Assembly (NCBI RefSeq): GCF_041956535.1 | Contig: NW_027192195.1 | Location: 1,095,189-1,159,188 of the forward strand | DNA from: Calcarisporiella thermophila CBS 279.70 | Taxonomy: Eukaryota > Fungi > Calcarisporiellomycota | Direction: 5' to 3' | DNA: 64,000 nt | Shown here: piece by piece, positions 2,065 through 39,198 of the stretch | How the letters are laid out: every line of letters starts with the position of its first letter | Numbering within the stretch: position 1 is the stretch's first letter | Made by a program: the position numbers and the translations under genes | Notes under the pieces: generated by a model | Told to the model about the DNA's origin: nothing | Seen by the model: only the letters and a program-made list of their open reading frames with translations | Database searches by the model: none

Positions 2065-3207
2065 CTACAACTGCACGCGCTTCTTTGCCGTCCGCTGGTA
2101 TGGCCGCAGCACCCATTCCGTGTCTGCCTCAACAATATCCACGGTTCCAAGTTTAATTTCGTAGAGCCGCATTTCGAAGCGCGGCCCCACTTCTGCAAGC
2201 TGCACCTCCTTGTTGTTGACCTTGTAGAAAACGTGATGTCTATGTTATTGGGCCGAGAGAATCCATTAGCCACCTCCGTCGAAAAAAAGAAACGAATTCA
2301 ACCAAAAGAAAAAGAGATATACCGGAAAGAGATGAAGTCGTTCTCGTTGGCAAATGTCATGACTCTTTTGCTGTCCTCCTTAGGGACGGGGAATAAGTAT
2401 TTTAGGATATTGGTGACACGTTGCCCTAGTTTTGAGTTGAAGTTGTTGAAAATCAGGTGTGGGTAGGCTTCGGAAACGGTTCCCGCGTTTTCAATGTCAT
2501 GGCGAAGAACAACGTTGTTAAGGGAGAAGAAGGCGGTGGGGCCGTAGGGAAAATGCGAGATGATAAGGCCGTCTACGCAAATGGGGAAAGAGCATTAAGG
2601 GGGAGTTGGGGAACAATAATGACAGAGATAGAGTAATTACCGGGAACACCTCGGTGCTCGTGCAGGATAATCAAGTCTGTGACCTCATTGGCACGACATG
2701 CGTCAACAATCTCCTTCATCACATGGTTACCTCGATTGATTCTCTGAGAATTTGGGATACAGAGGCGCATCTCTTTGGCAAACTGTTGTAATCTACTGCT
2801 AGGATCACGCGATGTGGTAATTAGAACTTTCGGGTCAAATACGCCTGCCCGTGCGTATTCATCATCTATATGCGTGGTTGGCTCAGTCTGGGCCTCATCG
2901 AAATGCATATCTTTGCGAAGGGCATCGCTCTCATTGCGGAGCTCCGTGGGAATGGGTTTACCCTCTAAAAGATTGGGCAGTTTATATGAGATAGAGTCGG
3001 GGAATAATGTAAGCAAATGGCGACTTACGTGCTAGGGCTTCCTTGATTTTCTGCTTTCGTTCATAGATCTGCCGCTCCTGGCTCTCTAGTGATTTACGGT
3101 AGAGGTATTCTCGGCGTAATCTTGTTTGTCTCCGAAGCTTGATAGATTGAAAATGAGTAAATAAACAATAACATAGCCTGGACCTGAATTCCACTTCTAC
3201 TTACCAT
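2065..3207 (-). CDS. IMP4: U3 snoRNP protein Imp4 (Brix domain), multi-exon
   Basis: M|[61 protein letters not shown]. Stop TAG at 2065-2067. The first coding exon is only ATG (3205-3207), followed by GTAAGT. Confidence 0.95.
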
Positions 3208-37686: not shown

Positions 37687-37922
37687 TTCCCACTAATTTA
37701 TTCTCATCACGCGGTAACATAATATCTCTCGATCTATTTTATCTAACCACTGACTCCATTGTTAATTGTGTGTGTGTTCCTATTGTAATATATCTAATAT
37801 AATGTTCATCTATATAATGTTTGCTGGGATTCATGGAAATCAGAAATGGCCGACCAATTTAGTGCCGCTGTTACTCCTCGTTTGGGAAAAAAATGTGTGC
37901 TAAAAGTAAAACTCAAAAATTC

Positions 37923-37994
37923 TGGACGTTCCGGGAATTGAACCCGGGGCCTTCTGTATGCGAAACAGATGTAATACCACTATACCAAACGCCC
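37923..37994 (-). tRNA. tRNA-Ala(CGC)
   Basis: GGGCGTT/AACGTCC acceptor stem with G3:U70, anticodon arm TCTGT-TTCGCAT-ACAGA, T-loop GGTTCAATTCC. 72 nt, with an oligo-T terminator just downstream. Confidence 0.96.
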
Positions 37995-38074
37995 AATCAT
38001 TGAACTTTGTAATCGTAATGTAATAGCTGCGGATGCAAATCACGTGATAAGTTTCAGCATTTTAGGAGAGATGG

Positions 38075-38409
38075 GGGGGAGGGTTAGTGTAGTGGACTAT
38101 TCCTGGGATGCCGATGAGAACGGCGTGGGTTCGAATCCCACTTCCCCCACCAGCACTTACTCTTAGTTTGTGGCTGCTATCCACTTGATCAGAAGCTGAG
38201 TCTTGATTATTGAAAAGATCGCCCTTACGATAAGTACAAAAGATTACATCGGTTTCACGTACATGCTATTCACGACAACTACGATACACGCATATCGATT
38301 GAAAGTCTATCGATCAAGGACCTATATCTCGTTATGTTAAGTCCATTGACATTAACTTCATGTAATATATGGAAATTAAATAAAAAGTTTCCATTGAAGA
38401 TCAAAAAAA
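38075..38409 (+). mobile_element. Full-length tRNA-derived SINE, copy 1
   Basis: A box TAGTGTAGTGG (38085-38095), B box GGTTCGAATCC (38128-38138), tRNA-like head ending in ACCA (38152) and an A-tail. Flanked by the identical 16-mer ATTTTAGGAGAGATGG at 38059-38074 and 38410-38425. Confidence 0.88.
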
Positions 38410-38425
38410 ATTTTAGGAGAGATGG

Positions 38426-38745
38426 ATCCAAAGAATACAAAATGCGCAAAGAGAACGCATACCACCGCCATGGTATCACTTAGCATCCATATTCTTACGG
38501 AACACTACGTCTCAAATTATTTAGACATAGGTATACTCACAACCGACTACGGCAAATAGAAGCTGATGAGAAGAGATGGCATCTGGCCAAGCATATACCA
38601 TGCGTGGCGGGAGCTGGATGGGCAGCTAGATATCGACAGAAGAATTACGCCGATGGAAGTCTTGGCCCTACCGGTCAACAGGAACAAATACTTCCTTGAG
38701 AGAGGTCAACCACTGCAATCTCGTGGAGAACAACATGGGCTCTAG
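38426..38745 (+). mobile_element. Degenerate LINE ORF2-like fragment interrupted by the SINE
   Basis: With the SINE removed, frames read ERWIQRIQ...PPPWYHLASIFLR and IWPSIYHAWRELDG...TPMEVLALPVNRNKYF, resembling the post-RT region of L1/Tx1-like elements. Stops and frameshifts are present. Confidence 0.4.
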
Positions 38746-38914
38746 GTCCTGGGTAACTTCTTCATAACACTTAATCCGACATTTCCAAGCACGGAACTCT
38801 TTAAATTATATCCCATGTTTTCTAGTACTTAATAAGCTTGTTCGGAAGCACATTTGTAATATATATTAAATAAACCACAGGACGCAAGTTCCCGCTTCCT
38901 TAGAGGAAAAAAAA

Positions 38915-39198
38915 TGTAGTGGACTAACCTAGGGATGCCGAAGGGAACGGCGTGGGTTCGAACCCCGCTTCCGCCACCAACGCTCTCTTCTAGCTTGTGG
39001 TTACTGTCCACTTGATCAAGTTTGAGTCTCTATTACTGGAAAGATCCCTCCTACTAAAGTAAAATGATTACATCGATATCACCTACACGCTATTCACAAC
39101 AATGATATATGCCTATCGATTACCGCCTATCGATCAAGATCTATATCTCATTAAGTCCGTTGATATTAACTTCATGTATTATATGGAAATTAATAAAA
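38915..39198 (+). mobile_element. Second, 5'-truncated and diverged copy of the same SINE
   Basis: Colinear with 38088-38386: TGTAGTGGACTA, GCCG-N7-CGGCGTGGGTTCGAA, CCACCA, CCACTTGATCA, GATTACATCG, ATTAACTTCATGTA, ATGGAAATTAA. No clear TSD. Confidence 0.85.

Follow-up and report, generated by a model that had tools for sequence, protein, structure and literature searches.

The window, by which we mean the whole 64-kb stretch of Calcarisporiella thermophila DNA that was analysed, contains a tRNA-Ala(CGC) gene and, upstream of this gene, a SINE flanked by a target-site duplication (TSD), a fragment of a LINE of the family here called Z, and a second, diverged copy of the SINE. One ORF of the window has 100% identity to a protein annotated for C. 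thermophila. The features are, in the order of their positions:

37922..37995, minus strand: tRNA-Ala(CGC) gene (ARAGORN; Rfam tRNA, 66.4 bits)
38059..38074, plus strand: 5' copy of the TSD, 16 bp, located 64-79 bp upstream of the first base of tRNA-Ala
38075..38152, plus strand: tRNA-like head of the SINE with acceptor stem, A box, B box and encoded ACCA
38153..38339, plus strand: body of the SINE, non-coding and of unknown origin, including an ATCGAT/ATCGAT hairpin
38340..38402, plus strand: LINE-X-like 3' tail of the SINE, with a predicted hairpin carrying AATAAA in its loop, followed by the terminal TTGA(A/T)GATC
38403..38409, plus strand: A7 tail of the SINE
38410..38425, plus strand: 3' copy of the TSD, 16 bp
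38426..38914, plus strand: 3' part of LINE Z, an older insertion of 489 bp ending in A8 (38907-38914)
38915..39198, plus strand: diverged SINE copy, inferred to be the oldest layer, 79-81% identical to all other copies

The 16-mer ATTTTAGGAGAGATGG is present at 38059-38074 and again at 38410-38425 and has no other match in the 64-kb window, even if up to 2 mismatches are allowed; in a shuffle control, the mean number of matches was 0.06, and 2 matches were reached in 0 of 100 shuffles. The element between both copies of this repeat measures 335 bp (38075-38409) and opens with GGGGGAG, the 5' strand of a 7-bp acceptor stem whose other strand is TTCCCCC at 38142-38148. Its head further contains an A-box-like sequence (TAGTGTAGTGG, 38085-38095), a perfect B box (GGTTCGAATCC, 38128-38138) and a DNA-encoded ACCA, consisting of the discriminator base and CCA, at 38149-38152. 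The longest open reading frame in the element does not exceed 66 amino acids. ARAGORN, applied to the window, did not call the copy at 38075-38409 as a tRNA, and the Rfam alignment of the head covers only the acceptor, the T arm and ACCA. The head is predicted to fold into the acceptor stem and three hairpins, the central one of which, with a stem of 4 bp, takes the place of the anticodon or variable arm. The T-arm region equals that of tRNA-Leu genes over 21 identical nucleotides, and the 5' half of the head had no match among the 25 tRNAs compared. Since the T arm is the sole part matching tRNA-Leu, the parent tRNA must, as far as can be inferred from sequence alone, be regarded as unresolved. 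In the body of the element, both stems of the ATCGAT/ATCGAT hairpin (38294-38314 in the young copy, 39115-39134 in the old copy) are kept in these two copies despite their identity of only 79%, and the loops differ (TGAAAGTCT vs TACCGCCT).

These results largely bear out what a first-pass annotation of the stretch had claimed about the locus. The perfect 16-bp TSD proved to be exact and, compared with the shuffles, non-random; the tRNA-like head, the A and B boxes, the non-coding body and the A-tail were all found within 38075-38409; and the second, diverged copy at 38915-39198 is real. The claim that the identical TSDs mark the copy in the window as young held in part: since its identity to the other scored copies is 95-98% (see below), only ~0.4 mismatches are expected per 16 bp, so that the TSD does not identify it as exceptionally young.

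The 5' end of the tRNA-Ala gene faces the head of the young SINE across 79 bp, and the spacer between the gene and the 5' copy of the TSD amounts to 63 bp. The adjoining LINE Z piece is 5'-truncated and has an internal deletion of ~930 bp relative to the 1.43-kb copies elsewhere; before the young SINE was inserted, its 5' end lay 80 bp from tRNA-Ala. The old SINE copy aligns to positions 14-311 of the element, without the first 13 nucleotides and the terminal tail, and is followed by single-copy DNA. The order that we infer from this arrangement is, from the gene outward, tRNA-Ala, young SINE, LINE Z fragment and old SINE, with the newest insertion next to the gene.

A high-copy SINE family in the genome

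Using the SINE of the window as a query against its own 28-Mb genome, we obtained 140-146 first-look candidates, 40 of which were scored. All 40 spanned the whole element (positions 1-335) with 95-98% identity to the copy in the window, and they were located on many contigs. The old copy, used as a second query, gave 24 further placements and thus at least 64 distinct placed copies. For 31 distinct copies, the element was read together with its flanks with regard to start, tail, TSD and tRNA neighbour. The 5' start GGGG(G/A)AGGG and a run of A at the 3' end were common to all 31. Copy-specific TSDs of 13-20 bp, mostly 15-16 bp, were detected by script in 21 of them, and three more, with 4-6 extra bases at the 5' junction of the SINE, were visible by eye. 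The mean divergence of the 31 copies from the majority base was 2.1%, with a range of 0.9-6.3%. Members with 5' truncations were found as well, comprising positions 143-335 and 260-335. A paralogous empty site is provided by the upstream region of tRNA-Ala in locus L019, which is uninterrupted and carries a single 17-bp TSD string; in locus L025, the same string flanks a SINE on both sides. The anatomy of the SINE, its copy number and its TSDs are thereby shown.

The claim of the first-pass annotation that the element is a tRNA-derived SINE mobilised by a LINE was supported by all checks that were run. Among the checks it had proposed, the genome-wide search for copies returned a high-copy family with one shared 5' start and copy-specific TSDs, the comparison of the 3' end with resident LINEs returned a match to the 3' end of LINE X (see below), and the search for empty sites returned the paralogous pair of L019 and L025, without a comparison of isolates. 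Two of the conditions it had named as refuting were not borne out: that only two copies exist is refuted by the at least 64 placed copies, and that the copies are LTRs of a larger element by the finding that they are solitary. The proposal that the family is probably undescribed held for the literature searched, in which we found no paper on transposons of C. thermophila or, likewise, of its phylum Calcarisporiellomycota; no comparison with Repbase, Dfam or SINEBase was made. A metagenome scan with a 37-nucleotide pattern of the SINE head gave 0 matches.

Further old copies, 70-80% identical, are present in L016 (plus strand, ~2975-3085) and L035 (minus strand, ~440-300). Both retain the pairing of acceptor and T arm as well as the encoded ACCA, and the copy in L035 shows one compensatory change (G-C to A-T) in the T stem. 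Since these old copies have kept the acceptor/T-arm pairing and ACCA, the family is an old one that underwent a recent burst.

A 3' tail in common with an L1-like LINE

The last ~60 nucleotides of the SINE match the 3' end of LINE family X at 79-86% identity, and when three SINE ends were aligned with five X ends, the similarity reached 65-70 nucleotides. Both ends finish in TTGATTGATC followed by poly-A, and a hairpin with AATAAA in its loop is predicted in both tails, with one compensatory change of a stem pair (T-A to C-G) between SINE and LINE X. LINE family Y has an equivalent predicted tail hairpin at the same place and ends in TTGATC-poly-A. The z-scores of these hairpins are modest, ranging from -0.9 to -1.9 for SINE, X and Y. 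The sharing of the tail between SINE and LINE is shown; that the tail of the window copy, 38340..38402, is the region recognised by the LINE reverse transcriptase is a presumption inferred from sequence alone.

LINE X runs upstream into the loci L061, L063 and L058, which bear a reverse transcriptase (RT) region. In the LINE group including X, an APE endonuclease is encoded together with a reverse transcriptase, and ~750 residues can be aligned with human L1 ORF2p (E = 1e-78); the closest relatives of the group outside the species are APE-RT-zfRVT proteins of 1150-1300 amino acids with 30-35% identity. A zf-RVT was observed in family Z only, the full 1.43-kb copy of which encodes the zf-RVT C-terminus. 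As for the copies of LINE X proper with an RT region, those in L061 and L063 contain a stop and the one in L058 has a short open frame only. An autonomous LINE X partner is thus not demonstrated: none of the examined copies with an RT region is intact, and the analysis contains no full-length copy.

At least five of the 1.43-kb LINE Z copies (L032:1501-2930, L033-L037; cf. 38426 in the window) have an identical 5' start inside ORF2, which suggests that they form a truncated and non-autonomous sub-family being copied in its own right. At L037:410-470, directly after a LINE Z poly-A tail, we noticed an extreme 5' truncation in which the insert consists of TTTGATC and A12 only, with a TSD of ~15 bp. 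Among long contigs, the closest foreign relatives of LINE X are those on a metagenome contig from ENA (L071:900-16900), where three L1-like LINEs with ORF1 and ORF2 are arranged in tandem and in the same orientation and no tRNA gene was detected. The contexts of the closest foreign LINE relatives (L071, L072) contained no tRNA genes and thus gave no evidence of shared targeting.

Position of the copies relative to tRNA genes

The proximity of the SINE to tRNA genes, which in the window concerns tRNA-Ala at 37922-37995, was absent from the first-pass annotation. In 18 of the 31 copies, a tRNA gene is located 77-98 bp (median ~84) from the first base of the SINE, and in 18/18 the two are divergent, i.e. 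head-to-head on opposite strands. The tRNA genes concerned represent 13 different anticodons (Ala-CGC, Ala-AGC, Lys, Thr, Ser, Gln, Leu, Cys, Arg-CCT, Arg-ACG, Asn, His and Val), and for at least nine of them the upstream sequences are unrelated and the distance is still 77-98 bp. Two further pairs of SINE and tRNA gene, on C9 and C8, were taken from coordinate tables and show the same orientation. If the TSD is subtracted from these distances, the first nick is inferred to have occurred 57-79 bp upstream of the tRNA. According to our own estimate, in which all 1459 first-look tRNA candidates were counted as genes, the chance of a random copy falling into a window of 22 bp with this orientation is below 1e-3. 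The same tRNA-proximal position is occupied by fragments of LINEs X and Z; a LINE X fragment in L032, for example, starts 92 bp from a tRNA-Asp gene. The position and orientation of the SINE relative to tRNA genes are thus shown.

For the remaining 13 of the 31 copies, no tRNA was called nearby. Four of these (L002, L004, L013 and L021) could not be scored, the sequence consisting of N for 0.9-1.4 kb from ~85 bp off the head, which is just where a tRNA gene should lie; three abut the poly-A tail of another element and are thus part of stacks; and at least the copy in L026 looks truly off-target. Rfam searches at the gathering score returned nothing for these 13 loci, i.e. no 5S, U6 or 7SL target, and a search of the genome for 5S rRNA revealed only 4 genes, none of them near a known SINE copy.

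Some observations on the surroundings of these genes may be added. The SINE flank at L025:1831-1960 is homologous to the upstream region of tRNA-Ala (L019:700-860), but unrelated sequence stands in place of the tRNA gene. Several different tRNA genes (for Ala, Thr, Arg, His and Leu) are preceded, at a distance of only 9-22 bp, by a repeat of ~385 bp with LTR-like termini (starting with TGTTAC and ending with GTAACA); we found it in L019:1100-1916, L002, L013, L018, L032:2931-3253, L007, L024 and L029. SINEs have inserted inside this repeat, and a second repeat, starting with TGTTACGTCG, follows directly; in L019, a SINE at 1501-1835, together with the second copy of its TSD, interrupts the repeat at 1100-1916. 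Ty3-like LTR elements of Rhizopus oryzae are found alongside tRNA genes (PMC2699053), and by analogy the ~385-bp repeats could possibly be solo LTRs of a tRNA-targeting Ty3-like element.

Proposed mechanism, alternatives and known systems

Taken together, these results identify the SINE at 38075-38409 as one copy of a young tRNA-derived family with ~150 members, and we assign a probability of ~0.8 to this reading as a whole, including mobilisation by LINE X and targeting to tRNA genes. According to the mechanism that we propose, RNA polymerase III (Pol III) would transcribe the SINE from the A and B boxes of the tRNA-like head, which is an inference without expression data. Because the SINE copies have no internal run of four or more T, read-through to the A-tail is possible. 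The tail of the transcript, with the predicted hairpin, AATAAA, the terminal motif and poly-A, would then mimic the 3' end of the L1-like LINE X, and the LINE X reverse transcriptase would recognise the tail hairpin and the terminal motif. Insertion of the SINE by the LINE machinery is envisaged as target-primed reverse transcription giving rise to the 13-20-bp TSDs, mobilisation by LINE X being again inferred. The nick would be position-specific, ~57-79 bp (about 65) upstream of the tRNA gene, and would leave the 5' end of the SINE ~80 bp away and divergent. Repeated insertions at one tRNA gene, each at the same distance, would push the older elements outward and in this way build up stacks.

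As both the identity of the tRNA and the flanking sequence are irrelevant, the feature recognised would be the Pol III transcription complex rather than a DNA motif. Recognition of TFIIIB or TFIIIC, as for Dictyostelium TRE5-A, is inferred here by analogy only, without binding data. A bolder reading is that a fungal L1-like LINE and its SINE independently evolved a TRE5-type recognition of the Pol III pre-initiation complex, and that the promoter of the SINE shares the Pol III factory of the tRNA gene; we would not wager on either side of this proposal. Judging from the size of the TFIIIB footprint in yeast, a spacer of ~80 bp would just hold two footprints arranged back to back, i.e. divergently. 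That the spacer reflects such a fit is conceivable, and it is speculation resting on the yeast footprint.

Three alternatives to this reading have to be considered. The first is sequence-specific targeting, in which the LINE endonuclease would read a DNA motif upstream of many tRNA genes, e.g. in the LTR-like repeat. In its favour, TCGAGAG- or TCGGGA-like strings occur in several targets, and a conserved upstream repeat is common to seven tRNA genes. However, the sequences upstream of at least nine other targeted tRNA genes are unrelated although the distance is maintained at 77-98 bp, and the TSDs of those nine have no shared motif beyond a frequent initial A, so that we regard this explanation as unlikely. 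The second alternative is survival instead of targeting, i.e. the SINE would insert anywhere and persist only in the harmless space upstream of tRNA genes. The compact genome of 28 Mb and the existence of copies without a recognisable tRNA neighbour speak for it, but selection cannot explain a window as narrow as 22 bp, one and the same orientation in 18 of 18 cases and the same junction position in LINE fragments, and the copies, being young (~2% diverged), have had little time to be purged. This makes the survival reading very unlikely. The third alternative is an element that does not depend on a LINE: an LTR, solo or not, part of some larger element, or a cluster of tRNA pseudogenes spread by segmental duplication. 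It can draw on the LTR-like repeats upstream of the same tRNA genes but is all but excluded by the copies themselves, which stand alone, measure 335 bp, have A-tails, are 5'-truncated in some cases, lack TG...CA termini, carry long TSDs of variable length and differ from one another in their flanks and neighbouring tRNAs; LTR, larger-element fragment and segmental duplication are also excluded by the common start, the copy-specific nature of the TSDs and the empty site.

The preferred reading, a tRNA-targeted SINE mobilised by an L1-like LINE, has its closest counterpart in social amoebae. In two reviews, position-specific integration of non-LTR elements at tRNA genes is described for dictyostelids only (TRE5, TRE3, NLTR-A and NLTR-B), and the fungal cases of tRNA-gene targeting are all LTR elements (PMC5006619, PMC5911963). 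Like the C. thermophila SINE, TRE5-A of Dictyostelium discoideum and NLTR-B of Polysphondylium are A-tailed insertions, target-primed (for the SINE by inference), at a fixed position upstream of the tRNA gene and in opposite orientation (PMC5911963, PMC5006619). An L1-like ORF2 with APE and RT is present in these elements and in the LINE group that includes the putative partner X of C. thermophila, and in both cases the targeting is independent of the identity of the tRNA. TSDs of TRE5 belong to the 12-16-bp class and are thus similar to those of the SINE. There are also clear differences. The host is a fungus and not an amoebozoan; TRE5 inserts 40-54 bp upstream of the tRNA gene (PMC5006619, PMC5911963), whereas the 5' end of the C. 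thermophila SINE lies ~80 bp away, with the inferred first nick at ~65 bp; and the system in C. thermophila is ridden by a tRNA-derived SINE, while no dictyostelid SINE is described in the two reviews. The likeness to the TRE clade is likely to be a convergence, although this judgement does not rest on a phylogenetic comparison.

Classical SINEs and the AfuSINEs of A. fumigatus (PMC5063351) resemble the family in several respects: their tRNA-related heads contain A and B boxes, the body that follows is unique, the 3' tail has been copied from a LINE and runs out into an A-rich end, and both TSDs and 5'-truncated members occur. Classical tRNA-derived SINEs that share the tail of a LINE are referred to as the stringent type, and the fungal SINEs described so far include Mg-SINE, Foxy and EGH24-1. 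In contrast to classical and fungal SINEs, the C. thermophila family is targeted strictly to tRNA genes, and the head still encodes CCA but has no normal anticodon arm. For Ty3 and other Ty3/gypsy LTR elements of S. cerevisiae, Yarrowia and Rhizopus oryzae, too, tRNA genes serve as safe sites of insertion within compact fungal genomes (PMC5911963, PMC2699053). However, these elements possess an integrase, short TSDs of fixed length and LTRs, while the C. thermophila element is an A-tailed retroposon with long and variable TSDs.

What is new here, judged from the literature searched and subject to the missing comparison with transposable element databases, is the C. thermophila SINE family and the LINE-type targeting of tRNA genes in a fungus; SINEs and TRE5-like elements as such were already known. 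LINE-type integration beside tRNA genes has so far been a textbook peculiarity of social amoebae, and the yeast examples are all LTR elements that use an integrase. If the bolder reading above is correct, C. thermophila would provide the first example outside Dictyostelia of non-LTR elements inserting at a fixed position beside tRNA genes, and its SINE would be the first to have taken over this ability. A LINE/SINE pair with such behaviour in an early-diverging fungus would represent a clean case of convergent 'safe-haven' targeting and a second, independent system in which to study how the machinery of target-primed reverse transcription reads the Pol III complex. The family also adds a well-defined and recently active SINE to the short fungal list and is useful both as a marker for population studies and strain typing and, as a natural probe, for locating the sites bound by Pol III in the genome.

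A last observation concerns the SINE head. At L011:1836-2011, we found a chimera in which the first 26 nucleotides of the head are joined directly to internal LINE X sequence with 97% identity, and a LINE X tail of 38 nucleotides with poly-A adjoins it. This chimera may be the product of a template switch and, as a mere possibility, a hint of the route by which the SINE head was captured.
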